From Epithemia pelagica (Eukaryota > Protista > Bacillariophyta): a stretch of DNA of 64,000 nt. The notes below the pieces were generated by a model, which saw only the letters and a program-made list of their open reading frames with translations, did not search any database and was not told where the DNA came from. Below, in pieces: positions 7,458 to 34,287 of the stretch. How positions within the stretch are numbered: position 1 is the stretch's first letter; the number at the start of each line of letters is the position of its first letter. The stretch is taken from positions 1,426,001-1,490,000 of the forward strand of contig OX337241.1 of NCBI GenBank assembly GCA_946965045.2, in the 5' to 3' direction. The translations under genes were made by a program, and so were the position numbers.

Positions 7458-7469
7458 CGTGATGGGCCA
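7458..7469 (-). promoter_or_regulatory. Primer-binding-site-like sequence
   Basis: TGGCCCATCACG immediately follows the 5' LTR on the minus strand. The tRNA was not assigned. Confidence 0.6.
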
Positions 7470-10101: not shown

Positions 10102-10145
10102 ACCATCATACCTTCCATGTCGCAATTCTAGCCCAATCACTCCAT

Positions 10146-10156
10146 GAGAGGGAGAG
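10146..10156 (+). promoter_or_regulatory. Probable polypurine tract of the outer copia element; a 3' LTR probably follows but its end is undefined
   Basis: GAGAGGGAGAG about 45 bp after the RNase H stop. No partner LTR in the window. Confidence 0.5.
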
Positions 10157-13800: not shown

Positions 13801-15989
13801 AGTCCCGGAGGAGGCAGTGATGGATGTGGAGGAGGATGTAGAGGAGAATGGGGGGGAGCTAGCCGATGGAAGGAATATGGAAGAGGGACAGGACACTGAT
13901 GCTAACGATCCGGTACATCAACAACAACAACAACAACAACAAGAACCACACAGATACAATCTACGGCCGAATCGTGAAAGGAGCTACGCGCACAGATACG
14001 GGCACTCGTTTGCTTGCATCGATAACCTGAAAGGCGGGCGTTATGATGGAATCCTTCGAGATGGAGTGTTGTTTCTTGTGGCCACTGAGGTGAATCAAGC
14101 CACACCGCAGATGCCTATGAAGAAAGGCATCAAACTGTTTGGGAATAAGGGAGTGGCCGCCGTGAAGGTAGAAATCCAACAATTGCATGATCGAGGAGTA
14201 CTGAGGGCAGTACACAAAACTGACCTCAGTTGGAATGAGGTACAACAAGCTCTGGGGTACCTAATGTTTTTGAAACGAAAAAGGTGTGGCAAGATAAAAG
14301 GAAGAGGATGTGCCGACGGACGCAAACAACGTGCGTACATAGAGAAGGAAGATTCAGCTTCTCCTACCGTGGCCACCGACTCTGTATTCATCACTGCCGT
14401 CATTGATGCCTTGGAACGACGTGTGGTCGCTGTGGCAGATATACCAGGTGCGTTTATGCACTCGGATATGGATCCTGGAGTGTACATGCAGCTTACTGGT
14501 CTGATGGCCGAGCTACTCCTATAAGTCGATTATGAAGCATATGCCCCTTATCTGACATACGAGAAGGGCGAGCCGGTTATATATGTGGAAATGTTGAAGG
14601 CCCTTTACGGGACGTTGCGTGCAGCTCGTCTCTTCTGGGAAAAATTGACAGCGGTGCTCAAAAGCTGGGGATTTCAAATCAATCCCTATGATTCATGCAT
14701 TGCCAACAAAACAATCAACAACAAACAATGTACGGTAACTTGGCACATTGACGATCTGAAGATATCGCATGTGGATGGTGCCGTTGTGAACAAATTTATT
14801 GACGACCTCAAAGCAGAATTCGGACAGTTGGGAGAAATCTCCGTGTCGGAAGGGAAAAGGCACGACTATTTGGGCATGTTCTTAGACTATGGAGAGGATG
14901 GGGTTGTGCAGGTGGATATGAGATCCTACCTGGACACCATTTTGATCTCGCTACCAAAAGAATGGATCGGTAAAGCACGGTCACCCGCAGCTAAGCATTT
15001 ATATCATACGGACCCGAACGCTCGAACGCTCAATGAGGAGGAAGCGGATCGCTTCCACAGTGTCACAATGCAGTTAGCTTACATGGCGCAAAGAGGACGA
15101 CCGGATATTCGCACTGCTGTGGCCTTTTTGAGCACTCGTGTCATGAATCCAGACGTTGACGATCAGAGAAAACTCGGTCGGGTTCTCAAGTACCTACAAT
15201 CAACCAAGGACTTGATCCTACGCCTAGAGGGTGATGGATCTGGAACACTCTGTTGGTGGGTGGATGCCTCCTTCGCTACTCACCCAGACATGAAAGGACA
15301 GACCGGCGGAATAATGACTATGGGCAAGGGTGCCGTCATGACTGCGTCGTCAAAACAAAAACTTGTGGCGCGAAGTTCGACCGAATGTGAGTTGATTGGC
15401 GTGCACGACGTGTTACCGTCAATGTTATGGAGCCAGAACTTTCTGAGAGCCCAAGGCCATGAAGTGAAGAACGTTGTACTTCACCAGGACAATCAAAGCA
15501 GTATCCTGCTGGAGCGAAACGGTCGGTTGTCGAGCTCGAAAAGAACCAAACACATCAATCTACGTTATTTTTATATCACAGATTGTATTCGCCGAAAGGA
15601 CGTGAGTGTGCGTTTCTGCCCGACGGACGAGATGATTGCGGATTTCTTTACAAAACCGTTACAGGGTCAAGCTTTTTATCGCCTGCGGGATATCATCATG
15701 AATGTGGTCCCGAGTAGCAAGTATCACTCCTCGGCCCAAAGGAGTGTGTTGAGGATATGTGACCAGGCGACGAGCAGTAGCGAACAAGGCGCGACTAAAG
15801 AGAGTGATTCGGAAGCAAAGGATCTAAACTTGAATGACGAAGATGCCGAAGCATGGACTTTGGTCCGTCGACGTGGCAAAAGCAACAATAGGCAAGAGGA
15901 ACAAGCAAGAGTTCATTCTAAGGAGATTACGTAGTTCGATAAGCCTATAAAGAGTTGCTTTTACGGCACGGCTTGTTTGAGTTTCAACA
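10870..15989 (+). mobile_element. Second Ty1/copia (CoDi-like) element; gag-pol with one in-frame stop at 14522-14524; no matching 5' LTR seen
   Basis: WLLLDNQSTVDII (protease); VDVLHVN / LLADGAF / EHVGDIKRYIRTVKER (integrase); KGRGCADGRKQR, ADIPGAF, WHIDD (RT); WVDASFA, QDNQS, RTKHI, MIADFFTKP (RNase H). ORFs 11033-14524 and 14585-15934 share one frame. Confidence 0.92.
15747..15989 (+). repeat. Putative 3' LTR of the second copia element (243 bp)
   Basis: Preceded by purine-rich AAAGGAG. Bounded by the inverted hexamer TGTTGA...TCAACA. Confidence 0.6.
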
Positions 15990-16341
15990 GGTGGGGTGGC
16001 GTGTGGTGTTAGCGGGATGGGTAACGGTCGTCCAGGGGTGTTAGTTTCAAAAGGCAGCAATATGATTGGGTTAGAAATGTCGTTTCACAAAAAATCACTT
16101 AGGAAACAAATGTCGTTACAAGTGTCTTACCGTGTCCCGGGAACCCATCGAATCACGGACAAAAAACATGGAGGGAAGATTCCATCAGCCGATCCAGTCG
16201 GTCCTTCACGGTCGCCCATGGCATGGCCAAGTCGACCATTGCGACAAGTCCTCTTCTGACCATCTCATGACCCTTTTGAGCATGGTCAGAAGCCTGGAAA
16301 AGAGGATACACTTCAATAAGTTAGAATAACAAATAGAGATC

Positions 16342-18428
16342 ATGAGTTCTGCAGCACAATTCACAGCGGCCAAGGCCATGGGGCCACAGTCGCAACGATA
16401 CGGAAATCAGTACTCTCGTTGGCCAAAGAAGAGTTGGAAGAAGCGATCAGGTTGGAGAAAGATGGACCTTTCGGTAATCTTTGAGTCCGACATCGACTGC
16501 CCCATCTGCAGGGCCAAGGCAAGAGGAATGGCCATCCCTCATCGCCCTCACCACCCCAGATGCAGCAAAAACACAACAACAAGGGGCAAGGGAATGAACG
16601 ATGGAAGAGGAGCAGAGGTAGTGGCCTCAGAAAAGGCCCAGGCTGCCCATGCCAAAGCAATCCGCAAGCAACTTACCAGTGCAGAGAGATTGTCCGCCTC
16701 CAATGTCACACAGGAGGCACTCAACACTTTCATGGAACATCGTCCCAATTGCTCGTCGAAAAAAGCAACGACAAGAGACGCTGAAAATGAAAAAACACAA
16801 TCAACTACGGAGACTACGGCAACAGAAAGTTCTACCGTTGGTGGCGAGGAAGGCGCGTATGTTCCAACAGCCGAAGATTTCAAGTTTGAGGTAATTACGC
16901 GTGTGACAGCAGTACCTACGGAGGTGCATGTCCCACGTGCTGTGCATGCGTTGGCGAGTTATGTGACCGACACGTGCCTTGGTTCTAAGCGTTGTGTTGA
17001 GAATTTGAAACCTTTCTTCACTAATATGACCGTTACTGTACCCCCCATTGCCGACAACACGAGTGCTTTGTACGACTCGATTGTGGGACAGGAACTCCTG
17101 GTTGTTGATTGGGAGCTGTTTTCCCCAGTAACCACTTGCGTTGTCCTCGTTGCCGGGGTAATCTCCAGCGTACGCGATCGAACTTTTCAAAAAACAAGTC
17201 CCTTTTCCCCATTTTCGCCATGTCTGGTCCCCCAAAGTATGCAATACTTATGGGATACAAGTGTGCCGGGTGCTCGGCTGCCTTCTATGCGAATGATGGA
17301 GAATTGCTCGCACGACTGCCTCCCTACATGGTTATGTGTTACCCAGCGGAACCCAAGTATGCTAGAGGAACATCGCATCTAGCTAAAGATGCTACGAGGA
17401 TAATGGAAGCATCAATGGTAACCTATGGCAATGGGGATTACATCAGTCGGATGCTATATGAAGGAATCAACACCTGCTATGAAGACAAGACAATGAGGTA
17501 CTATTCTTATTGTGCTGCTACAGGAAAAGAATCAGAAGACTACATGCAAAAGGATGTTGAGTTTCTGGTTCGCTACCCACCTTTAGGCGAGACAATCCGC
17601 CAGCTATATGACGATGGAGCAAGCTCCGAATGGCAACCCTGGATGGTGTCTGACAATGAGAGAAACACAAGAGAGATTCAAGGGGTTAGATGCCAGCACA
17701 TGTTTGCTCACGACCACACCCACCAGGTAGTGAAAAATTATCCAAGACGCCTCAATGCAGCTGCAATGTGGACCATGGCAACAGAGGCAGGAGAAATTGC
17801 TTGTGCAGTGTTAGTGCACGACACATCAGCACTCGAGTTTGCACATGCTGCGGAACAAGTGCTGAGACGTACCGGGTTTTGCCCCAAGGCCATGTACTCT
17901 GACACATGGCCTTGTGGCAAGGATTTTTGGTTGTTGTTGGTTGATGACTTGGAGGGCCGTCTTGGCCTTTTCCATTTCATACAGAGGATAACAAAGACGC
18001 TCAGACAACGGCACATTGACTTTGGGATAGCCATGAAGGATTTGTTGGATGCGATCTACGAGTACCATCCTGAAGACTTGGAGAAACTTGTTGGTTGTTT
18101 GAAAAATGGAACCATGTCAAGCTCCAAGAAACAATACACAGACGAAGAGATCAGTGAAATGATGGGAACCAAGACCTTTCGACAGAGGTACTCAAAGAAC
18201 TTACGGAAGATTATTCGGGGTGGCGATACGATTGTCCTCAAGTTGGAGGAGTGGAAGTGCAAATACAAGTGCACTTCCACTCCTGGCAAGCCACCAGCAC
18301 GAGGCCGATTGGATCCACACTCCAATCAACCTCTTTTTACGGCCGAAACACATCAAGCACTGGAAAACTGTAAAGAGAAGGCAAAGTTCCTTGCTGATCC
18401 CTTGCCCGTGGAGAAAATGTATCGTGAG
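16342..18428 (+). pseudogene. 5' part of DDE-like transposase copy A (probably DUF6729-related); frameshift near 17115-17125; interrupted at 18428
   Basis: Colinear with the 1100-aa ORF at 41968: CPIC...HHPRC, CPRC, DHTHQVVKNY, MYSDTWP, LGLFHFIQRI, LADPLPVEKMYRE. Confidence 0.85.
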
Positions 18429-18780
18429 CGTCTAAGGGCAGCGTCACGCGCCCCCAAAACGCACACCCCATACGCGCCGTCGGCATTTTTCGTACCCGGT
18501 TTTTTTATACGGATTTACACCATTTTGACTAATCCCCCCCACCACCACGCACATACAACATCATACACATTCACGGCGACCCTAGCTTCCACGCACGCAC
18601 ACTCCCATCTTCCACGCACAGAGAACTTACCTTCTAAGCAAACTGACCTTGCCCTCCACGTCCAAAACACTCTGAACACAAAGTACCAACCTCATCAGAA
18701 CAAGGCATCTATACACCCTCTCCACAGGTGCAATAACACAAGGGCAAACCCCCAATCTCTTCTATCCCATTCTCCAATGA

Positions 18781-18978
18781 CACCAGCGGAAGCCACTCAC
18801 CTTTTGCATCCCATGCTCCGAAAGCACCAGCGGAAGCCACACACCATTAGCATCCCATGCTCCGAAAGCACTGGCAGAAGCCACCCACCTTTTGCATCTC
18901 AGGCACCGAAAGCACCGGCAGAAGCCACCCACCTTTTGCATCTCAGGCTCCAAAAGCACCAGCAGAAGCCACACACTT
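18781..18978 (+). repeat. 44-bp tandem repeat, about 4.5 copies, left subterminal region
   Basis: Units of CACCAGCGGAAGCCAC...TGCATC...CCGAAAG start at 18781, 18825, 18869, 18913 and 18957. Confidence 0.9.
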
Positions 18979-19061
18979 ATGGTAACTCATTTCACAACAC
19001 AATCGATACCATCCACAGAAGAATGTGAAAACATGCACAGAAGCTAATGAAGAGATACTAT

Positions 19062-21280
19062 TTAAAAAAACCAGAGTCCGTGCTTCCTCCGCTTTTTCTG
19101 CTGCGGTTGATCTTGATCAGCACTGTCCACATATCCCATCCTCTCCCAATGTTTCTTCAGAAGATTCTCCATGAACACATTTTGTCTCTGAAACAGTCCA
19201 TCAACTGATACATATTCTCGATCATCCCTCACCTTCTGCTGCAATTCATCAAGACGATCAAGGCCAATATCACTCATACCACGTCCCTTTTTGTTTGCAC
19301 AACCTGAATACTTGTATTGTTCTACTCCATCTGTATCAATGTCCTCATTAATTTGGTGCGCTTGACACCAAGCAGGGTCTTCTTTGTACAACTTTTGTTT
19401 GAACTCTTGTCTGCTCCTCAGAGCCCATGCATCCCATGAATCTTCAAGAGCCAAGAGAATGAAAGCTTCATCACTTGTAGTAAACTTACTCATCGCTTCC
19501 TTCCATATTGCTTGCTTTTGTGCTTCTGGTGTATTAGCTGTAATATCTTGATTAATGATATCTCTCACCATTCCATCTCCATAAACCGACCCCCCAAATA
19601 CTTCAAACATGAAAACATAAGCATCATTGTCTTCATTCACTCCTCTCATTTGCATCATCTCTTCAAGACTTGGCATAGGACCTAGATTTTCATCGTCAAC
19701 CAATAACTTAGGGAATTGTTGCTGAACAATTCCACCACCATGTGTTCTCCATAGATTCATCGAGAAATGTTCTGCCAGGCAGGAAGGCTCATGTTAGAGC
19801 AAAACTTTCCACAAGAATGAGAACAAGATAGCACCAAGACAGTACCGACTTACTCATGAACCTGAACCTTAGCAATTGTAGAACATTTGATCTCTTGCGT
19901 CTGAATTCTTTCCTCAAATGGGGGGAATACCTTTCCCACCACTTTGCCTTAGCCACATCACCAATAATCTTTTCTCGTTCGAAATACGCCTTGAAGTGAT
20001 CCTTCCCCAAATGCCATAATCCATTATCATCTGCATCACAATCATCGGCAAGCGAGAAATACTTCACGTACCTCCAAGCAACATCAGGCACAAAAGTCTG
20101 GAACTCATCCGTACGACAAGCTAAGGGTAGATCCTTGTATTTGCTCCTGCTCTTTCTTTGCTGTTCTCTCTTTCTTTCCCTCTTGTCTTCTCTCCTTCTT
20201 TCCCTCTCACCAGCCGTTGCATTAGCCCCAGAACTATGACCATCACTAGTACCATAGATAGATGATGCAACCATTGAGCTATCGCCTCCGACTTCCATGG
20301 CTACAAGAGATGATGACGACCAAGAGAGATCAGAAAGTGAGGAAACATCATCCATCCAGAAGTCCACATCTTTTTCGATTGTACATTTCCAAACCCACAT
20401 CAACCCAGATTAGAGTTCCACTCTAACCAGTCAATACCGATAGGGCACAAACAAAACAAAGGAAGTACACCTTACTTACAAACGCGACTGACTCCTCCAC
20501 CACCACCACCACCACCACCCATAACCTCTTCCATAATATTTTCAACATCTTGGTGCGACATTACAGTCACACCACCATTGTCATTAGCTGCGCACTCAAT
20601 ATTATTTGTATCCATATGGTGCATCTGTGTTTGCTGTGGTTGGTGAACACCAGCGCCTCCTTGCATCAGAACGCCCCCATTGGGTGGGTATGGGACAGAC
20701 ATCATCTGCTGTTGTGGGTATCCTTGATGCACCATAATACCAGTTCCTTGTTGTGGATAAATCGTAGATGATGAGGCCGCCGGGAAATGATGATGTTGTT
20801 GCCCCCCAACAGGAGCTTGGGAATAATTGAACTGTGTATGGACCTGATGTTGTTGTTGCCCTTGAGGAAGAAATGACAACACCGATGGATTTGGTTGCTG
20901 GTGAGGATAAGGATGGGTATGATTCGGATATGGAGCAACTCCATTCGCATTATAAGGAACTCGTTGACCATGGTCGACTCCATTCATAACAGCAGTATTG
21001 TGTTCGGATTCCATAGGTGCTCCTGTATTAGTAACACCACGGGTTCTTGTACAGCTCATGGTACTACCTTGGTCCTGGGATTCGTTGGATGAAGCTCCCC
21101 GTCCTCCTCTTTCCTGAAATGTTACCTGACTCCTTTCAGATACGGATCCTGAATCCTCTTGGTTACGGTCATCATTGCTATTCTTGTTGTTGACATCTCT
21201 GATCGTTATTTCTTTGTCGTCTGTTTCATCATCGGTACTGCTTTCTCCAGCATCTTTGCCACCAGATAAACCATGGAACG
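19062..21280 (-). CDS. Accessory gene(s) of the large element, apparently spliced; function unknown
   Basis: Successive minus-strand ORFs 20472-21059 (Q/H-rich, open upstream to about 21280), 19789-20403 and 19062-19760. GTAAGT donors lie near 20478 and 19853, with a CTAAC...CAG acceptor near 19775. Motif TTSDEAFILLALEDSWDAW. The exact exon joins are unresolved. Confidence 0.55.
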
Positions 21281-21657
21281 CTGAATTCTAACTGCTTTGG
21301 TTGTCCTTTTTATCTGGCTTTGGATCACCACAGTGTTGGCTTCCTTGTTTTCTATTCTTGGTCCCCTGGTTTGTTTCAGAATGGGGCGACATGACAAGAA
21401 GAGTATACCTGATATAAGAAGTGTTGACAATGCAATGAGTTTTGGATGCAACAAGAGGAGAATGTTATGCCAATCCGTTTTCATTGAGGTCTTACCTTTC
21501 AACTATCAACTTTCAAAAGTCGAGCCGTTTGTTCCGAGTACACCCGGTTTTTTTTCATTGAACCAAATCGACAGGCGACAATTATACATTCAAACGTCCA
21601 ATGCCACATGGGCATTTGTGTTCGTTCCGATCCCATGTACTGATAGACTCATAGTTT

Positions 21658-24459
21658 ATGTGGAATAGTATGGGGGATGGGGGGGGGGGGGGGGGGGGTA
21701 AACCATATCCATCCACAACCAATGAGAAAGCGAGCCGGGCGACCATAAAATCGAAACCATTCGTGTCAGTCGTCACACTAGCAATGATTCTCATTCCACA
21801 AAGACTAAGGACCACAAAACCAATACCATGGGCCGTCCTTGTAAACTATTTAAGAAATAAACCTTCCGTCATCAAAGATCAATGGGTGGGCGAAGATCCA
21901 AATGCGAGTACAGGTGGTTCCATTCTTCCATGTCGTAAATGTAGAAATTGTCATGTATTATTCCACGTCTCCGGTATCTTCCAACATGAAAGGGTTTGTA
22001 ATACCAAGAGAGAAAACGGCACTTTGGTCTCACATGCATTGGAGCACGAATCGTCCATGATATGCCACGAAACTGTTAGAGTCGAGAACAATACCTTTCA
22101 TGATAAAGATCAGGGAAATCATTTAGAAAATGGAGGAACCGATGATAGTGCTGTAGGGATTTCAGAAAATGGAGGAACCGATGATAGTGCTGTAGGGATA
22201 CCCTGGGCGGACGATCGAGAAGATGAGGAAAGAGAGGATCTGCAACCCACTACACAAAAACAACCCATCGTGAGAAAGCCATGTCGGAATAGTACAAATA
22301 TTGCTCATTCCTTGCTGTCATCTGAGAATGAGGAAGAATCAGATGAGGACCAAGAAGAGGGACCACCAGCAGATCATGATGATGGGCTCCAACAAACTGT
22401 CGATGACAATGAGGATGTCCAAGGCAAAGGTTCATCCAGTGATGACCATGTTATCGATGAAAACTCAAAAGACAATCCTTTGGAATTTCCAGTGTATCTT
22501 GAACAAAATGGTCTCCGATTTTCCGAAGATGACAAGGCTTTATTGAGGTTGGCCATACTCCTCCGGAATGCTGGGTGTCCGAAGTTCATGTTCGATGCCA
22601 TTTTGGCATGGATTGATTCTACTAACGAGTGTTGTGGCTCACGTTTTTTCAATAAAAAACATCCACGGCGAAAGGGATTCATGGCGAAATTCGAAAAAAG
22701 AGGTTTCGATTTCCCCAAACCAAAGATTGTCACCGTCCCAATGGAAGTTACAACCAAAAAGGATATAATCGTTCCAGACAGCGAGAAGTCCGTTGATACC
22801 GTTATATTTGATTTTGTGCATCAACTTCGACGTGTCTTGCAAGATCCTGAAGCCACTTCCAAGGATAAAACAATATTATGTGATGACGACCCGTATCGCC
22901 CTTATATACCGAATAAATGTCTCGAAAACATACAAGATTGCCATGTTTTCCAACGTACCGTACGGAAATACAGACATGACAACGATACTTTCGTTGTTGG
23001 TTTATTGTCTTATATGGATAAGACACACGCGACGGGGGATGGTCGGTTTAATGCGGAACCAGTTGTTATGGTACCTTCATTTTTGACGATGTCTGAAATG
23101 CGAAAACCGAATAGACAAATCATCTAAGGGTTGATCACAGATATGGAACGGAAGTCATCTGCGGCCAAATATATCTTGGATAGGGGGTCCCCCTGTCGGA
23201 ATTATCATGCACAGCTCTCGCGAATACACCAAGCTCTTTTGAAGATACAGAATCGAGGTGGATTGTGGATGCGATTACGGATCCATGGGATCGAGAAGGT
23301 GGTGAGATAAGTATTACCCGGGATCATGATAAAGGGAGATGCGAAGTCACAAGATAACATCGCAGGAAGATATGCATCTCATCATCAAAGTGTTGGCCGG
23401 CTTGTTTGGCAGTGTGATTGCACACCTCGGGAGTCTAGATACCCATGGTCCACATGCAACTACCTCTTCAAAAACCCTATCCATTTCAGAAGCCTCCGTG
23501 TGCTTGGTTTAGAAAAACCATCAGGAAACCCAGTAGTTATCGATTCTGGACAACCCGGTATAGATGATCCAAGAAAGGATCCTTGGAGAGAACCTGTGAA
23601 CAATTCCAAGAAAATTTTACATCAGATTGGACAATACCCAGTGAACAACATCTACAACCATTTGTATTTGGGTGAGGGTGTTAATAAAACACATGGGATT
23701 TTTACCGCGGCATGTTGTGATGTATTACATACTTTGAAATCGGGGATCATGAAATATATCATGACTGATTTCTTTGCTCTGATGACAATGAGAGAAAAAG
23801 CCATGTTTGATTTCTTGTACAGCTCTTTCTTCCGAGCCAACCGGCAGTTGGTATTCTCTTATTCTTCTAGTTGGGGGTACCCCAGAACATCCTTCTCTGC
23901 AGGTATCAGTAATGTTACAAAGGTAACAGCCAATGAATGGGTTGGTATCATGTTTGTCTCAGCCGCTTTGTGTGTTTCTGTTCATGGTCATCTTATTTTC
24001 GCTTCCACTATGGCGGAGAAATGGAAAAAAGTAGTTGCAGAGTGGAAACAATGGTGCAAAGAAGAAGAAGAGAGACGAAAGAAAAAGGAAGAAGAGAAAG
24101 AACAGAAGAGAAAGAAAAAACAATCAGAAAAAAAAAAGAAAAAACGACAACGAATGGGCGCTGGACAAAACAACGTATCCTCTACCAACAATAAACGTCA
24201 ACGACAATCGAAAAAGAAACGGGTTGTACACCACAGTATCGCTGATGATTCATCCGATTCGGATGAGAATGACTCATCTGTGGATGATAGGAACGAAGAA
24301 ATAACCACAAATATCAACGACAATCTGCCCGGTCATGTACAGGAAAATGAAGATTACCAATATTGTGAACCTGACATTGAGGTACAGGTTACGAGCGAAA
24401 CAGTATTCGACGATGACCCTGTGGCATATGCATCGATCTGGGATACTCGTCTTGGTTGA
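21658..24459 (+). pseudogene. Plavaka/CACTA-like transposase with in-frame stops at 23125-23127 and 23308-23310
   Basis: N-terminal CRNC...HERVC finger; GLLSYMDKTH...EPV; IMIKGDAKSQDNIAGRY; CDVLHTLKSGIMKY. ORFs 21658-23127 and 23326-24459 are in one frame. C-terminal catalytic motifs were not found. Confidence 0.7.
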
Positions 24460-25313
24460 ATACTGTTGCAATATGGAATCTCATCTCGAATACACGATTT
24501 GATGTTGAAATTTCGTTTTGTCTTTGTAGCAGTGATAGGAATGTTGTTCTCACTGAAGACGTTGCAGCGGCAGCCGAAGGAATCAAAAACGAATTCAAGG
24601 ATCTTGTAGACAAGATTATTAATCACGAGGGACGACTTGATGTGATTTCCATTATGAATGGTAATCAAGAGGGATATACAGAAGAGCACCAGTGTCAGAT
24701 GGGCACATGGGCAGACAGACCGGAATTCCTTGACGGATCCTTCATCTGGAAACAAAACTTCCTCGAGACATGTCTTGTTTGCGGTAAATTCACCTGTAAT
24801 CAACGGGTAACAATATACACATGCAAGCATTGTTTCCGTCCTTTACAAGTACCTGGGTCGTCTTCATCTTGTGATACCACTTGTGCAAAGACTCCCTGTA
24901 CTTCATCCATGAACATGTCCTTCGTATGGGAGTTCTGTATGACTTTAAGAGAGGCATTCCAAGCGTGTTTTGACTTCCACAAGTTTGGAAAAAACAGAAA
25001 GATTCCCTTTTTTGAATATATCCCAGCCGAAACTTGTGGGATCTTGACAAAAACGGTCGGTAAAGTATGGAGAGAAAAATTGGAGCCTTATTACGACGAG
25101 GATACCAAGTGGCGTAGTCCATCTCATTTCATTCACACCGAGAAACAATGGGCATTGTGGCTGATTTCTTCACCACCTGGTTGCTCCTTTCGCAACTATA
25201 TGCCTATTTTTACTGCATGTTATCATATAGCACAGGAAAATCCAAAGAAACACGCTGCTGGTGTACCACACCAGAGTGCTCGTAAGAAGCAAAAGACGTG
25301 GAATGCTCCCTGA
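24456..25313 (+). CDS. Hypothetical Cys-containing protein (285 aa) inside the element
   Basis: ORF with CLVC, CKHC and further Cys residues. No family recognised. Confidence 0.35.
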   Translation: MNTVAIWNLISNTRFDVEISFCLCSSDRNVVLTEDVAAAAEGIKNEFKDLVDKIINHEGRLDVISIMNGNQEGYTEEHQCQMGTWADRPEFLDGSFIWKQNFLETCLVCGKFTCNQRVTIYTCKHCFRPLQVPGSSSSCDTTCAKTPCTSSMNMSFVWEFCMTLREAFQACFDFHKFGKNRKIPFFEYIPAETCGILTKTVGKVWREKLEPYYDEDTKWRSPSHFIHTEKQWALWLISSPPGCSFRNYMPIFTACYHIAQENPKKHAAGVPHQSARKKQKTWNAP

Positions 25314-25352
25314 ATTTGTTTTTCCTTGGTGATGAATGCATCCAGAAAGAAT

Positions 25353-26720
25353 TTATAATGTTCCGCTACGAATGCCTTGAACCGTCTTGGTTATACCATG
25401 GTCCTCTCTTGTTTCGTTGACAGTTGCATTCATAGACCTGGAACTTACTGCCCAAAACCAACTAATAGTGTCGTTCTTCATGTTCCCATCTTTATGTTGT
25501 TTTTGTGTGTGTATTGACGTTCCATGCCGGATCACACGTCCATCCCATAGAACCGAAACCCCATGAAATAGTTGTATACAAAGACCATGGTATGTAGTAC
25601 CATCATACTCCACAAGAATATTCGGCAAAACAAAGAACCAATTTTGGGAGTCACCTGGGATTGTCTCTGTCCAGATTGCGAATGAAACAGAACCATCGTG
25701 AACATCATAATGTGTCGTGTTCATGAGGTTCAAACTCAGGGTAATGGCTGAGGTCATACCTCCGACTCTTCCTCCGAATTCACTAGGCATTTCTTCGCCA
25801 GCTGAATCTTCTAGATACCGGAATGTTGGAATCACCCCAGGATATTCGCGTTCACAGAACCTTTTTGCCGCTGTACTTATTTTCGGCAGTATCATCGATA
25901 ATGTCTTGTCCTTTGTAAATAATTTCTCGGAAACGAAAGTAGAACCGTTTCCTCTTGCCGCAGTATTACCAACAGTAGTCATAGATCCCAAGTCTCCCTT
26001 ATTACATCTGGCATTGGCCGCCTTTCTCAGAGACCCAGTACGTGTAAATTCCCTTGCTCTGTAGTGTAATAGGTCCAACAACGTCTGGTCCTTCCGTAAC
26101 AGGGATGTCACTCGAATGTAACTAAGTGACTCTGGTCTCCCATCATTTCGGCGTGTCCGAACAAAGAAAGTTATGTTTCCCCGAATACGATGGTCGTATA
26201 CCAGTGGCCTTGGGTGTGTACCGGACGACATTTGCAACCATAGGTTTCGATGCAAAGCACCACTAACATATCTCCGACTCCCTTTCTTATTTGAGTCATT
26301 CCTGTTTATAATCAGCCTTGTTTGATATTGTTCCCGTGACATGTGATGTGTCATCGACTGTTTATTCCCTGGCTTTTCGATCTTTCCCTTGTCATCGAGG
26401 TACACGTCAGGAGGTAAAAGTGGGCTCCCATCCTCCACATCGGACCATTGGTAACATTCCTTCACAGTTTTGCCATTATTAGTAAGATGTTCACCCCAAT
26501 CTAGACTCCAACAACGATGAATCTTTTTCAAGAATGCATTACTTGCAGGTTGGCCATCTTTGTGTCGCAGACGTAACCAAGACAACGGTAGTGGGACTGA
26601 TGACGATGTGATGTTGGACGACCTTGATAGTTCTTGAAATTGACGCACACATGTATAAAAAAACCCCAGCCAAAGGGAAGAGGATAATGATATCTCTGAA
26701 GAGGTGATCATTTTCGTCAA
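25353..26720 (-). CDS. TET/JBP-like Fe(II)-dependent dioxygenase
   Basis: GDLGSMTTVG; NTTHYDVHD (HxD at 25704-25712); FVLPNI; GVSVLWDGRVIRHGTS (distal His at 25524-25526). Spacing and context match the TET/JBP double-stranded beta-helix. Confidence 0.72.
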   Translation of the reverse strand: MTKMITSSEISLSSSLWLGFFYTCVRQFQELSRSSNITSSSVPLPLSWLRLRHKDGQPASNAFLKKIHRCWSLDWGEHLTNNGKTVKECYQWSDVEDGSPLLPPDVYLDDKGKIEKPGNKQSMTHHMSREQYQTRLIINRNDSNKKGSRRYVSGALHRNLWLQMSSGTHPRPLVYDHRIRGNITFFVRTRRNDGRPESLSYIRVTSLLRKDQTLLDLLHYRAREFTRTGSLRKAANARCNKGDLGSMTTVGNTAARGNGSTFVSEKLFTKDKTLSMILPKISTAAKRFCEREYPGVIPTFRYLEDSAGEEMPSEFGGRVGGMTSAITLSLNLMNTTHYDVHDGSVSFAIWTETIPGDSQNWFFVLPNILVEYDGTTYHGLCIQLFHGVSVLWDGRVIRHGTSIHTQKQHKDGNMKNDTISWFWAVSSRSMNATVNETREDHGITKTVQGIRSGTL

Positions 26721-27342
26721 GACATAAATTTTTGTTAGTCCGAATCATCATGACAGGATCTTCGAATATAGAGGACGACACATGTGTTGTCTTTTTCCTG
26801 ATTTCTCTATATCTTGTCCTCGACAAGGTACATTCCAATATGAATGCATTGTGGATCGTTTTAGTTACAAGACCCACCGGGATTTGAGCAACAATCATAG
26901 GACAACATTCTGGTATAATGTTCGAATGACTGACAACGTCATCTCTTGTCTCCACAACATCATCCATAGCCTTGTTGTATATTTCTGGGATACGTGCAAA
27001 GACACTCGGGATATCTTTCATATCGACCTTCCGTTGTATCATATCCTTTTCGAACGACAAACCAAAACAATCTTGATCGTCGTAACTTCCAAAGTAACGC
27101 TGCAGTAGATGCGATAGCATCCTTATTCGATCGATGTCCTTGTCTAAGACAAAGTAGCACATTCTTTCATGTGCACTTTCGTTCCGATGCGACATGGCGA
27201 CCACTGTTTCACTTATACGTTGCGTTTTCTTCTTTTCGTACTTGGCATAGGTCTCCTGTGTACATGTGAGTCTCGAAATCGTCTGATCCGATGCCATATC
27301 TTCGAAAGTGGGACGAATATGTTTCTTCTTTATGGATGTCAC
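26539..27342 (-). CDS. Hypothetical ORF (267 aa), possibly the frameshifted N-terminus of the dioxygenase gene
   Basis: Same strand and overlaps 25353-26720 by about 180 bp. An A7 run near 26657-26663 is a candidate slip site. Confidence 0.4.
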   Translation of the reverse strand: MTSIKKKHIRPTFEDMASDQTISRLTCTQETYAKYEKKKTQRISETVVAMSHRNESAHERMCYFVLDKDIDRIRMLSHLLQRYFGSYDDQDCFGLSFEKDMIQRKVDMKDIPSVFARIPEIYNKAMDDVVETRDDVVSHSNIIPECCPMIVAQIPVGLVTKTIHNAFILECTLSRTRYREIRKKTTHVSSSIFEDPVMMIRTNKNLCLDENDHLFRDIIILFPLAGVFLYMCASISRTIKVVQHHIVISPTTVVLVTSATQRWPTCK

Positions 27343-27554
27343 CTCCGCTCTAGGATGTGTGCTTGTCGTTTCCGAACTTCTTGTAGTACAAAGACATAGT
27401 TAGTACGCGGATAGAAATGCCAAATACCTGAAACTAGAACGTCTCTTCTCTTGATGGAGAGTACTAATAATATAGATCAGACTTGCCTTTTCGCTTCTGT
27501 GTTACTGATCGTGACAGTAGAAGATTCAGTTTGGTCTCTCCTATTCTTCTCCCT

Positions 27555-30488
27555 TTATTGTTCTTTACTCATGAAACGGAGAGTTTCCAACGGTACACGA
27601 CCCCATGCTGTCTCTGGAAATACAGGGACCGGTCTGTAGAGACCACGATGTTCCTCTTTTGACACACCAACTTCTTCAACTGAACCATCATGTGCATTGG
27701 TGTACGTAATCGAAGCAATATCTCCGTTGCACAAGGGGCAACTCTCGTTCATTTCACGAGGTGTCGATTTCTGTTTCCCCATAGGAACTTGTTTTTCGGT
27801 GGTAAGGACATGACCAAGACACACCCGACAAAACTTGTGCCCGCATCTCTCGATCCGACAGTCGTTAGGACGCTGTCCATGGCATATGGCACAATATTGT
27901 TCGGAGTCTTCATCATATTCGTCTAGGACGATTGTCTTGTCTTTCTTCGCGATTAATTCTGTCTCATGTAGATCGTGCGGTATTAGCTCAGCATGACTAT
28001 GACCACATATGGAACAAAATCGATTCTTCACCGAATTCCGGATGAAAGTACATGTTGGACAATGATAATGAGGACAGTTGGAGGTTTCTTGCCTTGTCCA
28101 ACTCACGATAGAAAAGGTCCGACTTCTATCCAGATCCTTTTTAAGCAATGAGGTCCCACAAGTGGAACAGAGTGCCTCTTTCTGATCTTCATCGTTCAAT
28201 GTTCGTACCAGATCCAAAAATCGCCGATCTTTGCGAAGTCGTTTGAGCGCCTTGTCCGCTCCTGTAATCTCTTGTATCACTTTAATGTCCTCGAATCGTT
28301 CATCGTCGGAATCCAGCACATCTTCCATTACCTCCCCTCGATCTTTCCCTTCCATTATAAACCGGCGACTGCGTTTGATCCTTGGACGTGTATCGTCATT
28401 AACGTCCTTGAAACATACACGCAGAGTCGAATCACGTTTCGCTTTATTGATAGCCGTACTCACGATATGATTGCAGGCCTTGTGACATTCTCGCCTACAC
28501 GATGGCAATTCTTGAGCCCATTTCCCCATCATCTGATCACAGGACATATTAGGGGACGCCTTTGACAGGATCTCGTCGATCACACATATTATTGATACTT
28601 GGGGAAGCGTACACGCACTTGGTGCCACCGGATTCGGATACTTCTTATAAATGAATCTCCAGTCACATCCAACGAGCTCTTCCTTTATATCAACGCTCAA
28701 GAATGATTGGATTTTCTTATCGTCGTCCAATAGCCTTAGTTTCCGTAGACATCGAATCACTGTAGGCCTCCACGAGCGAATATCCCTTGTCGATAATGGA
28801 TCGAATATCAACACTTCTCTTTGATGTGCTTGTAAGAGGATTAAGACGGGATCAAAAGCTTCATACTTGGAAGTGACGACGACCAATGTAGTATCGGAAG
28901 ACGACGAACTCAAATCCATTGCAGTCGTTGTGTCCATTCTCAGACTATCTTCGTCGATTTGCTCAAAGGAAACGGACTTGTTGTGCCATTTATGAACCAC
29001 CAGCACAAGCATCGACCTGAAAATGAGGGGAGGGATCCCCTTAAACTTAGTCGTCTCTTGAGTATTCGTCCGTAGCAAAAGGTTTCGTCTGTACTGGCGA
29101 TGTGGGACAAAAAGGACGTCCATTTTCCCATTGTCATGTTGTAGAGAACCATTCTTGTTGGTACAGCAAGCACAGGTAAAGACAAATCGCAAAACAACTT
29201 CATGGATGCTTCCCTTACGTCTAACGGCACTTTTTTTACAGAGATCCCAAGCTTCATTGATCGCTGACATCGACTGTTTGAGGGACCAGTTAGCCATATG
29301 AATCAAACGGTCGTTAGTGAAAGATGCAAGGTCGTCTGATGGACCAGGTTTATTCTTGAGAGGAGGTGGTTTCTTTGGTATTCCTTTAGGTTTGTCGCTA
29401 CCGTGGTCAACATGTGATTTACTTTCCAACAGACCCACCTTCGATTGAGAGGAAGATTTTTTTGTCGTCGCTTGTTTTCCTTTTTGTGGTTTCTTTTTCA
29501 ATGCAAGAGTATCAAAAATGGAACTCCGATCCTCCTCGGTCGCTGACAGAGACTGAGATGGTGATTTGCTCTCGTTATTTGAAACAGTGAAAATGGTAGA
29601 ACTTGTTGCACCATCACATTTACTGTCTGACGCTCGTTTACGGCGTTTCCTGTCTTGAGATCGTTGTTCATGTCGCCCCTTCTGATACTCCTTCGTCTTT
29701 GTAGCGTATTCCCGTTCCGTCGTCTGGTAATATGAAATTAGAACCGCCAAATTGGAATAGTCGTTTGCGGGATACTTAGCAGCTCTTGGTATGTCAAAAT
29801 AAGGACAAAACCAGCAATCAGGAAGTGTAAGGGCTAATGCTTTTTCAACATCGACTCCTTCCATTTCATAGGAGTCAGATTCCAATACCCGATAGACAGC
29901 TGCCATATGTTGAACGCTCCAAACCATTTCTCGGACTGGTATTGTTCTGTCTTTCCGAAACTTTGATCTATCAGACGTCATGTAGTCCAATATTTTTGCA
30001 GCCACGACATTAAGCCGTCTCTCCATCGAATACGAGTTGAGGACAATATCAGCGAGCATAGGATGGGCTCCAAGAAACACCTTGAGGGATCGAGTAAAGC
30101 TTGCGCTCGACTTTGATCTTGTCGTGCACGGGAATTCCTTGTCCCACAGACGAAGTGCGTCTCCATATAGAGTTTGTTCGAATAGGTCGATTCCTGGTGA
30201 AATAAAACTACCAGCTCCGTCACTCTTATTTCCCTCTTGTTGTTCTTCGATCGTCTCTACAAGTCTCAGTATCTTCGGGAAACAAACAGCAGCATGCGAG
30301 GCGATATCACTGAAAATACTTGATCCACAGCGCAAGAGGGATACGAATATGGTTTCACCTCCATATGTAGTGGAGAAATCTGTCCAATTATCAGTGTTGG
30401 AATAAACAGAATGATACCACTCGATTGTATATTCATAGCATATCAAATCTGGGAAATATCGATCGAAATCTTCTACCGAATCAGCCAT
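27555..30488 (-). CDS. 977-aa protein with a C-terminal C3HC4 RING, an NZF/RanBP2-like finger and a possible degenerate Ulp1-like fold
   Basis: CAIC...CGHKFCRVC...CPLC; CPTCTFIRNSVKNRFCSICG; VLILLQAHQREVLIFDPL resembles Ulp1/SENP strands, but no catalytic His/Cys is evident. Confidence 0.75.
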   Translation of the reverse strand: MADSVEDFDRYFPDLICYEYTIEWYHSVYSNTDNWTDFSTTYGGETIFVSLLRCGSSIFSDIASHAAVCFPKILRLVETIEEQQEGNKSDGAGSFISPGIDLFEQTLYGDALRLWDKEFPCTTRSKSSASFTRSLKVFLGAHPMLADIVLNSYSMERRLNVVAAKILDYMTSDRSKFRKDRTIPVREMVWSVQHMAAVYRVLESDSYEMEGVDVEKALALTLPDCWFCPYFDIPRAAKYPANDYSNLAVLISYYQTTEREYATKTKEYQKGRHEQRSQDRKRRKRASDSKCDGATSSTIFTVSNNESKSPSQSLSATEEDRSSIFDTLALKKKPQKGKQATTKKSSSQSKVGLLESKSHVDHGSDKPKGIPKKPPPLKNKPGPSDDLASFTNDRLIHMANWSLKQSMSAINEAWDLCKKSAVRRKGSIHEVVLRFVFTCACCTNKNGSLQHDNGKMDVLFVPHRQYRRNLLLRTNTQETTKFKGIPPLIFRSMLVLVVHKWHNKSVSFEQIDEDSLRMDTTTAMDLSSSSSDTTLVVVTSKYEAFDPVLILLQAHQREVLIFDPLSTRDIRSWRPTVIRCLRKLRLLDDDKKIQSFLSVDIKEELVGCDWRFIYKKYPNPVAPSACTLPQVSIICVIDEILSKASPNMSCDQMMGKWAQELPSCRRECHKACNHIVSTAINKAKRDSTLRVCFKDVNDDTRPRIKRSRRFIMEGKDRGEVMEDVLDSDDERFEDIKVIQEITGADKALKRLRKDRRFLDLVRTLNDEDQKEALCSTCGTSLLKKDLDRSRTFSIVSWTRQETSNCPHYHCPTCTFIRNSVKNRFCSICGHSHAELIPHDLHETELIAKKDKTIVLDEYDEDSEQYCAICHGQRPNDCRIERCGHKFCRVCLGHVLTTEKQVPMGKQKSTPREMNESCPLCNGDIASITYTNAHDGSVEEVGVSKEEHRGLYRPVPVFPETAWGRVPLETLRFMSKEQ

Positions 30489-30609
30489 ATTAACGTGCGA
30501 TTCAATCAGCTTGGGGAAGAAACAAGGAGAAATTTTCTTTCGATGCAGGGTTCCGATGCAACTTGATACTACCGTTTCTCAAGCTTGCGTGATGGAAACC
30601 CTGGAGGGT

Positions 30610-32230
30610 CTTGGTCCATAGGGATGGAGGAGTGAAGGATATGGGTGTACCAACTTGATGTCTCGGTCCTTCCAGTCAAGAATCAGTAGCAAATACAACA
30701 ATCCAATAGGGTCTTGGTCGATAGAGATGGAAGAGGGAAGTATGGGGGCGCACCAACTTGGTGTCTCGGCCCTTCAACAGAACCACCAATCAAGATACAG
30801 CAATCCAATGGGGTCTTCTTGGTCAATGTAGATGAAGGAGGGAAGGAGAGGGGTGCACCAACTTGGTGTCTTGGCCCTTGTTCCAATCGGGAAGGAGTAG
30901 CAACACAGCAATCCAACAAGGTCTTGGTCGATGGAGATGGAGGAGTGAAAATTGGGTGCACCAACTTGGTGTCTTGATCCTTGTTCCAATCGAGAAGGAG
31001 TGGCAACACAGCAATCCAACAGGGTCTTGGTCGATGGAGATGGAGGAGGGAAGGAGAGGGGTGCACCAACTTGGTGTCTCGGCCCTTGTTCCAATCGGGA
31101 AGGAGTAGCAACACAGCAATCCAACAAGGTCTTGGTCGATGGAGATGGAGGGGTGAAGGAAATGGGTGCACCAACTTGGTGTCTCAGCCCTTGTTCCAAT
31201 CGGGAAGGAGTAGCAACACAGCGATCCAACAAGGTCTTGGTCGATGGAGATGGAGGGGTGAAGGAAATGGGTGCACCAACTTGGTGTCTCAGCCCTTGTT
31301 CCAATCGGGAAGGAGTAGCAACACAGCAATCCAACAGGGTCTTGGTCGATGGAGATGGAGGAGGGAAGGAGAGGGGTGCACCAACTTGGTGTCTCAGCCC
31401 TTGTTCCAATCGGGAAGGAGTAGCAACACAGCGATCCAACAAGGTCTTGGTCGATGGAGATGGAGGGGTGAAGGAAATGGGTGCACCAACTTGGTGTCTC
31501 AGCCCTTGTTCCAATCGGGAAGGAGTAGCAACACAGCAATCCAACAGGGTCTTGGTCGATGGAAATGGAGGGGTGAAGGAAATGGGTGCACCAACTTGGT
31601 GTCTAGGCCCTTGTTCCAATCGAGAAGGAGTAGCAACACAGCGATCCAACAAGGTCTTGGTCGATGGAAATGGAGGGGTGAAGGAAATGGGTGCACCAAC
31701 TTGGTGTCTCAGCCCTTGTTCCAATCGGGAAGGAGTAGCAACACAGCAATCCAACAGGGTCTTGGTCGATGGAAATGGAGGGGTGAAGGAAATGGGTGCA
31801 CCAACTTGGTGTCTCGGCCCTTGTTCCAATTGAGAAGGAGTAGCAACACAGCAATCCAACAGGGTCTTGGTCGATGGAAATGGAGGGGTGAAGGAAATGG
31901 GTGCACCAACTTGGTGTCTCGGCCCTTGTTCCAATTGAGAAGGAGTAGCAACACAGCAATCCAACAGGGTCTTGGTCGATGGAGATGGAGGGGTGAAGGA
32001 AGTGGGTGCACCAACTTGGTGTCTTTTGCCCTTTGTTCAATAGAATCCTCACCAATCCGACCGTTCAGATCGTTGAAAATGGTCTTATGGGATAATAGGA
32101 GGGAAGAAGCAGCGGCAATCCAGCAATCCAACCAGTTTTGGTTGATGGAAATTGATGGGAGAATGAAATGGGTGCACCAACTTGGTGTCTTCGCCCTTTT
32201 TCAAACAGAACCACCAATCCAGTCGTTCAG
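30610..32230. repeat. 105-bp tandem array, about 13 regular units plus degenerate flanking copies
   Basis: The CACCAACTTGGTG core recurs at 30751, 30856, 30959, 31064, 31169, 31274, 31379, 31484, 31589, 31694, 31799, 31904, 32009 and 32175. Confidence 0.95.
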
Positions 32231-32444
32231 AGCGTTGAAAATTGTCTTGTGGGATGATAGGAGGGAAGAAATAGTTGCCAAACAGCGATCACATGGTTGG
32301 GTTTTCATGGAAACAGAAGAAAATGATTAGTGGGCATATAGGAAAACGACAAAACGAACTCTCACTGTTGTCTTGTCGACTTGGCTTACCTAGCACCTTT
32401 CCAATTTGAAAAAGGAAATGATTCTCTTTGTGTTCGCCTGTTTG

Positions 32445-32512
32445 TTGTAGCTGTTGTTGTTGTTGTTGCTGTTGTGTTGTTGTTGTTGTTGTTGTTGTTG
32501 TTGCTGCTGCTG
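32445..32512 (+). repeat. (GTT)n / (GCT)n microsatellite
   Basis: Visible trinucleotide run. Confidence 0.9.
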
Positions 32513-32809
32513 TGTGTTTTTTGGGGCGTTGGGGGTTGGTGTGAGTTGGATGAGGCACTCTATGACTCTATCGTCAAAAAGTGATCACAAAAGTGGGAGA
32601 GTATATCTTTTGTGTGGTTGTTGTGTGAGGAAAATCTAATTTTCAGCGTTCTTCTGTGATTTTGTGTCCATTGTTCTTCGTATGTCACTGTGACGTGATT
32701 TGGTGGTGGAGGAGAAATTTGTGGGTCGCTTTTGGAGTTTACGTGCGACTGGAATACTAGGCGTTATATGTGTAGCTAGTAGTTAGGTATCTAGGCAAAG
32801 GTTAGGCTC

Positions 32810-33000
32810 TGTGCACGCGTTTCCACATACAATAAACATGCTCACGCGGGTGTCAACACGTTTCACGCGTTGTCTACACGTTTCACGCGCATTCACGCGC
32901 AATCTGGAGCGCCACGCGCTTCGTACGCGCCAAATGCGCGTGATCCGTGTTCTGGGGGTGCTGCACGCGCCTATTGGGCGTGTGTCACGCGCCTGTTGGT
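32810..33000. repeat. Cluster of about ten (C/T)ACGCG motifs next to the right TIR
   Basis: Repeated cacgcg / tacgcg, including ttcacgcg three times. The same motif occurs near the left TIR (about 18444 and 18471). Confidence 0.8.
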
Positions 33001-33042
33001 GGAATTCCAGTCACTTATCTTCAAAAAACCTCCTTAGACGAG

Positions 33043-34287
33043 ATACCTCCATCACCAAGATCAAGTAACCAGCTAGTGGAGTACGTACCTTTGAGAGGAG
33101 AGAGTAAGCTCGAGAGCTTTCATGATAATTTGACGCATTTTGCCAACTGTGGCATGCGAGAAACTCTCGCAGATGCTTTGAATTTGGCAGGCACGGCCCA
33201 GTATAACAGGGCAATTCGTCACAAGATGAGAATCATGACAAAGTCTCAAGAAGAACGTTCAGTGGTGCCTGCAGGATGGGAAATGGTGGTGAGTTTTGGT
33301 AACGCATGCAAAACAAACATGATCAATATACTTGCCTCGATGTCTGGAGCTTCTCGTCCTCCCTTTCCAGAGGTTGAGAAGCTTCCAGAAGATACGGGAG
33401 AAAGGTTTTTCTCCGAGTACCTGGAAACGAGAAAAGAAATCACGCAACAAGTTCCAAAGCATCCACTCAACGATCGATGCCAGTGCCGAAAATGTGCGAG
33501 CAACAAGAAGAGGTTGCCGCATGACACGTCCATTCCATTGTTGGGTTTGGCAGAGGAGGAGTCAGAGGTCGAAGATGAAATCCAACAACAGGACAGCGAG
33601 GAGAATCCAGCCAAAATACAACAACCACAGACACAGCCAGAAACACAACAACAGACACGGCAAGAAACGCAACAACAGACACAACAACAAGAAACAGCAC
33701 AAGCACAGGCAATCAGTAGCAATAAGAGAAAGGAAAGAGAGGGAGAAGAAAAAGAGAGCGACGATTTGGATGAGAACAACACCAGCAACAAAAAGCAAAA
33801 GGTTACAAACAACAGCGAAGCCTTACCAACAACAACGATGGCAGCAACAAATCAATCAGCAGCGACAGTGCAGGATCAACAACAACAACACAAAAAGCCT
33901 CAAAATGCAGCAAACAGCACACCTGCAATGGCAACAACAGCAAATGGGTTGGTGATACTGCAATCGGCAACAACAACAACGACAACAAGACAGAAAAACC
34001 AACCTGTCAACCCGTACAAGCAAAATCAGCAACGGCCAACAACACTCCCCGGTCAACAGCAATCCCCCTTTGCATTCCACAGCAATCCCCATGGCTGGGG
34101 TGGTCTTCAATCCGTCCCAACATGTATGCCCACCTTTCCTCCCTTCGGACCACCACCTCGTGTCCAAACCCAGTTCTGTTGCGTCAAGTACATGAAGTAC
34201 TGCGTAGAACGAAGGAAAGGACGTCCACCCCATGACCGACGCTGCCCCAAACGAGCCTTGAACAAGGCACCATCTTCATTCTCTTGA
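33043..34287 (+). pseudogene. 3' part of DDE-like transposase copy A
   Basis: RGESKLESFHDNLTHF, PEDTGERFFSEYL and terminal CC...GRPPHDRRC are colinear with the C-terminus of the 41968 ORF. Confidence 0.88.

Follow-up and report, generated by a model that had tools for sequence, protein, structure and literature searches.

A probable Plavaka-lineage giant transposon carrying a TET/JBP-fold dioxygenase in the diatom Epithemia pelagica

The window analysed here, a 64-kb stretch of the genome of the diatom Epithemia pelagica (contig OX337241.1, forward-strand positions 1,426,001–1,490,000), contains at window positions 18429–33040 an element that we assign, with a probability of about 85%, to the giant cut-and-paste transposons of the Plavaka lineage, within the CACTA/EnSpm–Mirage–Chapaev–Transib (CMC–Transib) supergroup, with a dioxygenase of the TET/JBP fold among its cargo. 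The original prediction, made from the letters of the sequence alone, had placed a TET/JBP-like DNA-modifying enzyme inside a Plavaka/CACTA-like transposon, and this pairing has held up in comparisons of relatives and structures. The element belongs to a real, recently amplified family of Plavaka lineage, in which the TET-fold dioxygenase is accompanied by further conserved cargo: an intact member encodes a transposase of 1376 amino acids (aa), the 647-aa dioxygenase, a RING-finger protein of about 1000 aa, two Cys-rich paralogues and one further gene, and contains tandem arrays of 44-, 170- and 105-bp units.

Termini and independent insertions

The element is bounded by a perfect 9-bp terminal inverted repeat (TIR), with a 2-bp target-site duplication (TSD) immediately outside it, as had been read from the sequence at the outset. 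These boundaries are as follows.

18427–18428, no strand: left TSD copy, AG (TA, TA and TG in other copies)
18429–18437, plus strand: left TIR, CGTCTAAGG (identical start in copies L006, L007 and L008)
33032–33040, minus strand: right TIR, the reverse complement, reading CCTTAGACG on the plus strand (sequence match and breakpoint of other copies)
33041–33042, no strand: right TSD copy, AG (sequence)

The 9-mer, counted as CGTCTAAGG or CCTTAGACG, has exactly two matches in the window, where 0.21 would be expected, and two or more matches were seen in 1 of 100 shuffles. A search with the dioxygenase open reading frame (ORF) returned a 97%-identical protein of 647 aa, heading a cluster of 23 distinct sequences, some of them fragments, all of which come from one European Nucleotide Archive assembly, ERZ21939226. 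At five loci fetched through the dioxygenase (L001–L005), similarity to the window ends exactly at 33040 and the sequence beyond is unrelated. Three full-length copies, rebuilt by walking with a neighbouring 411/412-aa gene, measure 21,484, 22,097 and 23,698 bp, and each begins with CGTCTAAGG, finishes with CCTTAGACG and is flanked by its own duplication (TA/TA, TA/TA and TG/TG, respectively); their differences in length are due to the number of units in the 170-bp satellite. Together with the AG of the window this gives four independent insertions with 2-bp TSDs and unrelated flanks, while the copies themselves diverge by about 2–3%. The family is thus mobile, with at least four independent insertions that share identical termini and differ in their TSDs, which bears out the earlier view of the element as a mobile unit. 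In two runs the word depth of the element, which is not a copy number, is about 6–9 times that of a host gene nearby.

The insertion site tells the same story from the other side. When the element and one AG are removed in silico, 17109–18428 joins 33043–34284 in frame to give 854 aa with no stop; as the excised flanks yield an uninterrupted ORF, the insertion was clean, and as it is this flanking ORF that excision restores, its target was another transposase-like gene. By themselves, an inverted repeat of 9 bp and a duplication of 2 bp count for little and could have arisen by chance around a group of unrelated genes, with no mobile element involved. This explanation is refuted: the homology breakpoints of six other copies hit both 9-mers to the base, with unrelated flanks and differing TSDs, and the interrupted ORF is restored in frame.

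The interrupted ORF at the host site (plus strand) is transposase-like, with DDE-like motifs and no meaningful Pfam match. An uninterrupted paralogue of this split gene was sought, and the sole match is a stretch of 264 nt at 44004–44267, inside an ORF of 1100 aa (41968–45270), which is 66.7% identical to and resembles the left part of the split gene. At L001 a second CCTTAGACG is present at 1976–1984, 2.4 kb outside the element terminus, possibly the leftover end of a further copy.

Transposase and lineage

A transposase-like pseudogene had been proposed inside the element, and its decayed state is confirmed by comparison with intact copies.

21658–24444, plus strand: Plavaka-type DDE transposase pseudogene (alignment to intact copies, Pfam of relatives, model)

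Its two ORFs, 21658–23127 and 23326–24459, share one frame, contain two in-frame stops (23125–23127 and 23308–23310) and are cut at 24444. An exhaustive search by phmmer yields 1309 relatives of the transposase at E<=1e-3. Among 40 aligned relatives (at E<=2e-27 to the transposase), 22 match the Pfam family PF18759 Plavaka, with a best E of 4.6e-14, none matches Transposase_21 at E<=0.01, and no transposase family other than Plavaka appears; the Plavaka link is therefore transitive, lying in the relatives and not in the transposase itself. The same alignment shows no variation at D223 and D330 and at least 90% conservation at E803; in the full protein these residues are D399, D506 and E979. 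The copy in the window keeps D399 (codon 23017–23019) and D506 (23338–23340) and has lost E979, because it is cut after residue ~874.

The AlphaFold model of the transposase has a predicted local distance difference test score (pLDDT) of 77 and a predicted template modelling (pTM) score of 0.80, and it matches the RAG1/Transib core. A Plavaka transposase is expected to have its DDE triad on a core of RNase-H type, with the E separated from the second D by a long insertion, and the conserved residues and the model agree with this; the region of the E is absent from the window copy. To our knowledge, RAG1 and RAG-like proteins, together with Transib, are the only solved members of the CMC–Transib supergroup. 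Compared with the Protein Data Bank (PDB), the first 43 matches to the model are all RAG1 or ProtoRAG (the amphioxus RAG-like protein), followed by Transib, with TM scores by target of 0.45–0.56 over about 850 columns (PDB 9jpu, 6oet, 6b40 and 6pqx), whereas a profile search of PDB sequences gave nothing meaningful. These best, and essentially sole, solved-structure matches fit membership of the supergroup, but identity to them is only ~10%, the Transib TSD is 5 bp and no RAG2-like partner is present here. The match to a Plavaka profile that the original prediction had called for is thus obtained indirectly, through the relatives and the RAG1/Transib fold, while direct Pfam matches, to Plavaka for the transposase and to Tet_JBP for the dioxygenase, are absent.

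Two findings speak against a Plavaka assignment. The intact 1376-aa transposase has no Pfam match at E<=0.1, and the termini of the family, CGTCT..AGACG, fit neither PlavakaA, which has a 2-bp TSD and TGT..ACA, nor PlavakaB, which has a 2–3-bp TSD and CATCA..TGATG (Kojima 2025, PMC12730594), although the 2-bp TSD does agree with the published Plavaka TSD (PMC12730594). As CGTCTAAGG..CCTTAGACG differ from both of these pairs of ends, and as a possible terminus of the sister element described below, CATCTAAGG, shares only CATC with PlavakaB, the termini point to a separate Plavaka sublineage. Mirage elements are credited with 2-bp TSDs, and some structural neighbours of the transposase carry Transposase_21 or DUF4218; with the missing direct profile match and the unusual ends, these would favour a different lineage of the supergroup (EnSpm/CACTA, Mirage or Chapaev). 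We consider such a placement improbable in view of the PF18759 matches among the relatives and the lack of Transposase_21 there, the Atlas feature search, in which Plavaka clusters lead (Plavaka first, 0.95), and the four insertions of the family, which show no CACTA termini and no 3-bp TSD. The Plavaka lineage accordingly remains the preferred placement.

A dioxygenase of the TET/JBP fold

The second gene on which the assignment turns had been predicted as an HxD...H dioxygenase, and alignment of its homologues agrees.

25353–27297, minus strand: TET/JBP-fold dioxygenase gene, 647 aa when intact (homologue alignment, fold search)

In the window the iron motif reads HYD at about 25704–25712 (HxD within 25695–25721), with the distal His inside 25515–25547, and the equivalents of the triad H529, D531 and H591 are all retained. 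Across 12 homologues the pattern NxxHYD...WDGRxxRH is invariant, as are the three triad residues and R587 and R590 just upstream of H591, R430 being nearly so. The ORF is intact in five of the six copies examined.

A model built from the alignment of the 12 homologues has TET2 as its top Foldseek match (E 1.3e-7). In VIA-align the Z scores are 16.2 for TET2 (~275–293 residues), 14.3 for NgTET1, 13.7 for CcTet and 13.4 for CMD1, against 11.8 for ALKBH3 and 10.7 for FTO, and the top 16 entries (Z 16.2–12.4) are TET2, NgTET1, CcTet or CMD1 only. Fungal Tet-like 2-oxoglutarate (2OG)-Fe(II) oxygenases lead the matching AlphaFold DB clusters, and of 100 matches in the Atlas feature search 66 belong to the Tet_JBP set, the Atlas cluster that is matched being labelled mostly Bacillariophyta. 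Related sequence also occurs in marine metagenomes; this and the cluster label are indirect pointers to a diatom source. As modelled, the double-stranded beta-helix fold of the dioxygenase is nearest to those of TET2, NgTET1, CcTet and CMD1, above other 2OG oxygenases.

Four points weigh against reading the enzyme in this way. Neither PF12851 (Tet_JBP) nor PF20515 (Tet-like 2OG-Fe(II) oxygenase) is matched by the window ORF, the intact protein or the 12 homologues, even at E<=1; phmmer and profile searches of PDB sequences with the dioxygenase returned nothing; the model is of moderate quality, with a pLDDT of 58.8 overall and 70–85 in the core; and no invariant Arg follows H591, in the place where 2-oxoglutarate is bound by TET/JBP enzymes, an Arg being found at +7/+8 in 7 of the 12 homologues. 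A profile search of the protein database for distant relatives likewise gave only unannotated proteins of ERZ21939226 and no annotated relative, so that there is no sequence bridge to Tet_JBP.

The dioxygenase would oxidise a modified DNA base, most likely 5-methylcytosine (5mC). That it does so on the DNA of the element, opposing methylation-based silencing, is a tentative proposal to which we give somewhat less than an even chance. The same fold may serve another chemistry, such as conversion of thymine to 5-hydroxymethyluracil, known from JBP and the dinoflagellate enzymes, a CMD1-like vitamin-C adduct on 5mC, or action on RNA or on N6-methyladenine (6mA), by which the element would be marked without being demethylated. 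CMD1 comes close behind TET2 in rank, as does CcTet, whose solved structure has 6mA DNA bound, the Arg expected after the distal His is not conserved, which would fit a different co-substrate, and dinoflagellate TET/JBP enzymes hydroxylate thymine and silence transposons (PMC11572971). This alternative is nevertheless somewhat the less likely of the two: the best structural matches are TET2 and NgTET1, the AlphaFold DB clusters are led by fungal Tet-like proteins of transposon type, and diatoms, according to work cited in PMC12344493, methylate transposons at cytosine.

A paralogue of the dioxygenase, of 600 aa and 32% identical, is present at L009 (ctg1176l, 10001–11803) with no Plavaka transposase nearby, its flanks holding Kelch-repeat genes and a 796-aa ORF with weak similarity to integrase (rve). 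This paralogue may have been domesticated, or it may travel as cargo in some other element.

RING protein and accessory genes

Directly upstream of the dioxygenase lies a gene whose C3HC4 pattern, as in RING-type E3 ligases, is in keeping with the predicted RING/zinc-finger identity.

27555–30488, minus strand: RING-finger protein gene, 977 aa (C3HC4 pattern)
27723–27893, minus strand: C3HC4 RING, C-x2-C...C-x-H-x2-C-x2-C...C-x2-C (pattern)
27993–28169, minus strand: second Cys/His zinc module of the RING protein (pattern)

The Pfam RING score of the window protein, 19.4 bits, is just below the cut-off of 21, whereas the orthologue in the sister family passes with 29.5 (cut-off 21) and 28.0 (cut-off 27.3). 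A homologue search with the RING protein returned its own 97%-identical cluster only. The SUMO-related function that had been suggested alongside is not supported: a Ulp1/SENP SUMO protease (Peptidase_C48) was an Atlas lead at only 0.75, with no Pfam match at E<=10, and the candidate His of the catalytic His-Asp-Cys triad is absent from the sister-family orthologue.

The RING gene is on the same strand as the dioxygenase and ends ~260 nt upstream of its start (gap 27298–27554). The gap is ~180 nt in two other copies, the greater length in the window arising because the RING ORF stops earlier there, and it is non-coding, either intergenic or intronic, since a 340-nt insertion in L001 harms neither ORF. 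All four copies examined have retained a donor-like TGA|GTAAA(G/A) immediately ahead of the RING stop; in-frame GT..AG combinations that would fuse RING and dioxygenase occur in all copies and are too numerous to inform. The fixed adjacent upstream position suggests that the two proteins work together.

All the ORFs listed with the original prediction are recovered, and its single accessory gene is indeed present, but is one of at least two.

19062–21059, minus strand: accessory gene of three ORFs, 19062–19760, 19789–20403 and 20472–21059 (ORFs)
24456–25313, plus strand: Cys-rich accessory gene, 285 aa (291 aa in a full copy; ORF, alignment)

The left gene, whose N-terminus is rich in Q, P and G and which has no Pfam match, probably consists of its three ORFs joined by two short introns with GTAAGT donors, judging from the sequence; all three are open in every full copy, and a homologous piece occupies the same relative position in the sister element. 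The Cys-rich gene is a paralogue of the 412-aa gene that is deleted from the window copy, sharing with it a Cys-rich region and a conserved C-terminal half, and Pfam gives only a weak zinc-finger match for it. Scanned against Pfam, the full set of ORFs in the window and the intact proteins showed, beyond this match, just weak RING matches.

Tandem arrays and subterminal repeats

Arrays had been noted near both ends of the element, and repeat analysis recovers them, together with a hexamer cluster.

18764–18976, no strand: left subterminal array, 44 bp x 4.8 (also L006 2381–2593)
30605–32313, no strand: right array, 105 bp x 13.6 at 30605–32024, then two 162-bp variant units (repeat analysis)
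32814–32991, no strand: CACGCG cluster, 9 of the 23 matches in the window (motif count)

Each unit of the right array carries the palindromic core CACCAACTTGGTG, and the ORFs listed over the 105-bp repeats are artefacts of the repetition. A further CACGCG copy stands beside the left TIR at 18445, and the cluster resembles the subterminal repeats of CACTA-type elements. Observed CpG amounts to 0.77 of the expected in the element and to 0.97 in host genes; within the element, the genes lie at 0.86–1.07 and the 105-bp array at 0.33. In L006 a 170-bp x 16 satellite that is absent from the window extends over 11252–13998, its unit having the palindrome TCCATGGACATGGA, and other copies have more units.

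Cargo as an integral part of the family

The extent to which the cargo belongs to the element can be judged from a sister family, represented by the element L010 (ERZ21939226 ctg1279l, 1342–19357), whose proteins are 32–52% identical to those described above. Its gene order and relative orientation are those of the family, namely RING, dioxygenase, Cys-rich gene, transposase and left gene, so that the arrangement first seen in the window does recur beyond it. It has two or three RING fingers, and its possible terminus CATCTAAGG is at 1342–1350, ~2 kb upstream of the RING gene; the other terminus was not found within the locus. Within the family itself, the five dioxygenase copies fetched at >=90% identity are all equally far from one and the same terminus.

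The pooled ratio of nonsynonymous to synonymous polymorphism (pN/pS), taken from few non-independent pairs that were partly picked for intact ORFs, is 0.22 for the dioxygenase, 0.31 for the transposase, 0.36–0.39 for the Cys-rich genes and 0.40 for the RING gene, and about 1.4 for the low-complexity first exon of the left gene. From the low values it would seem that the copies diverged while their lineages were under selection for functional proteins. A search for RNA runs returned none; the three runs that contain the element behave as DNA, with contigs of up to 500 kb and no spliced joints.

Were the cargo genes functionless passengers, whether host genes or a nested element, captured once and copied passively, one might expect what is indeed seen in part: no known domain by sequence except RING, a dioxygenase paralogue at L009 without a transposase neighbour, and the loss of several genes from the window copy. 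The order kept in the sister family at such protein divergence, the cargo pN/pS of 0.22–0.40 with the dioxygenase lowest, and the constant spacing of the five dioxygenase copies make this account quite unlikely, and favour a cargo that is maintained as part of the transposon.

State of the copy in the window

The element was originally described as self-contained, and this does not apply to the copy in the window, which is a non-autonomous, decayed deletion derivative with a dead transposase; autonomy exists only at the level of the family.

24444–24445, no strand: deletion junction, 6.49 kb (alignment to full-length copies)

At 14.6 kb, this copy is without 6.49 kb of the full-length element, and the deleted DNA holds the ~500 last residues of the transposase, the 412-aa Cys-rich gene and the 170-bp x 16 satellite array. 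The dioxygenase has in addition a +1 frameshift at about 26658, with T7 where five other copies have T6, though a miscount of the homopolymer in the assembly may be the cause instead. The window copy would move only with transposase supplied in trans by an intact copy. In the copy on ctg1347l none of the eight ORFs is interrupted, and as the copies differ by only a few per cent the family is open to experimental test.

Surrounding sequence

The surroundings of the element are transposon-rich, with two long ORFs containing pieces of a Copia-type reverse transcriptase (RVT_2) at 11033–15934 (plus strand). In two DNA runs the short segment 52334–52727, between host genes, stands out by a word depth ~20–30 times that of the neighbouring sequence; numerous loose ends fall at 52497–52555, and the segment is probably a high-copy short repeat or a transposon end. 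Beside other copies, ORFs for PIF1-type helicases are found at L002 (1–3363) and L010 (417–611), and these could belong to Helitron-like neighbours.

Comparison with known elements

The closest described systems are the TET-carrying PlavakaB elements of Agaricales, for example in Agaricus bisporus and Gymnopus confluens (Kojima 2025, PMC12730594), such elements having been first noted by Iyer et al. 2014, according to its citation in PMC12730594. Both systems combine a Plavaka-type DDE transposase and a TET/JBP-fold dioxygenase within one TIR-bounded element with a 2-bp (or 2–3-bp) TSD, and for both an escape from methylation-based silencing is the proposed role. In contrast to the fungal elements, with their CATCA..TGATG ends, the family described here is found in a diatom, ends in CGTCT..AGACG, is much larger (21–24 kb) with three tandem arrays, carries the RING gene, the two Cys-rich paralogues and one further gene as extra cargo, and has a dioxygenase too divergent for the Pfam families Tet_JBP and 2OG-FeII_Oxy_6.

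The red alga Bostrychia moritziana has giant Plavaka elements with the accessory genes PAG1–3 (bioRxiv 10.1101/2025.02.11.637652). These are likewise of a 17–19-kb class or larger, have several accessory genes, one of them for a putative 2OG-dependent oxygenase, and contain tandem arrays of inverted-repeat units beside the oxygenase gene, which the palindromes CACCAACTTGGTG and TCCATGGACATGGA recall; the idea that an element modifies its own DNA or chromatin is also common to both. However, the PAG3 oxygenase is ParB-linked, with a best HHpred match of PhyH type and not TET, PAG2 (an N6-adenine methylase with SET) has no counterpart in the diatom family, and no RING or Cys-rich genes are reported from the alga. 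A more distant parallel, mentioned in bioRxiv 10.1101/2025.02.11.637652, is the Arabidopsis Mutator-type element VANDAL, whose factor VANC reverses methylation of the element's own copies. There the transposase superfamily is unrelated, VANC is no dioxygenase and the anti-silencing effect is experimental, whereas for the present family it is inferred.

A literature search found, in the library searched, no paper linking Plavaka elements, transposon-borne TET or TET-type enzymes to diatoms, in line with the earlier statement that no description in diatoms was known, the TET-carrying Plavaka elements described being those of fungi (PMC12730594).

Proposed mechanism and significance

In the mechanism that we propose, the transposase would bind the termini and the subterminal CACGCG repeats, excise the element and reinsert it with a 2-bp stagger, the dioxygenase would counter silencing as set out above, and the RING protein, whose gene directly precedes that of the dioxygenase on the same strand, would act with this enzyme. 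An extended form of this proposal, which we regard as doubtful, is that RING protein and dioxygenase, possibly as one spliced protein, form an anti-silencing module that the Cys-rich zinc proteins steer to the palindromic arrays of the element, with an unusual co-substrate or base product as in CMD1.

Transposons carrying TET enzymes have so far been taken as a fungal peculiarity, and the present family suggests that a transposon with its own base-oxidising enzyme recurs across eukaryotic supergroups. Diatoms silence transposons by cytosine methylation, yet the literature search described above found no TET or Plavaka paper for them, and the family is therefore a candidate for bringing about active demethylation, or a novel modification of DNA, in these organisms. 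Profile-based surveys of TET enzymes would miss this dioxygenase, since it lies outside the current Pfam profiles. If the anti-silencing module proved true, a transposon of the diatom lineage would be carrying a self-recognising editor of the epigenome.

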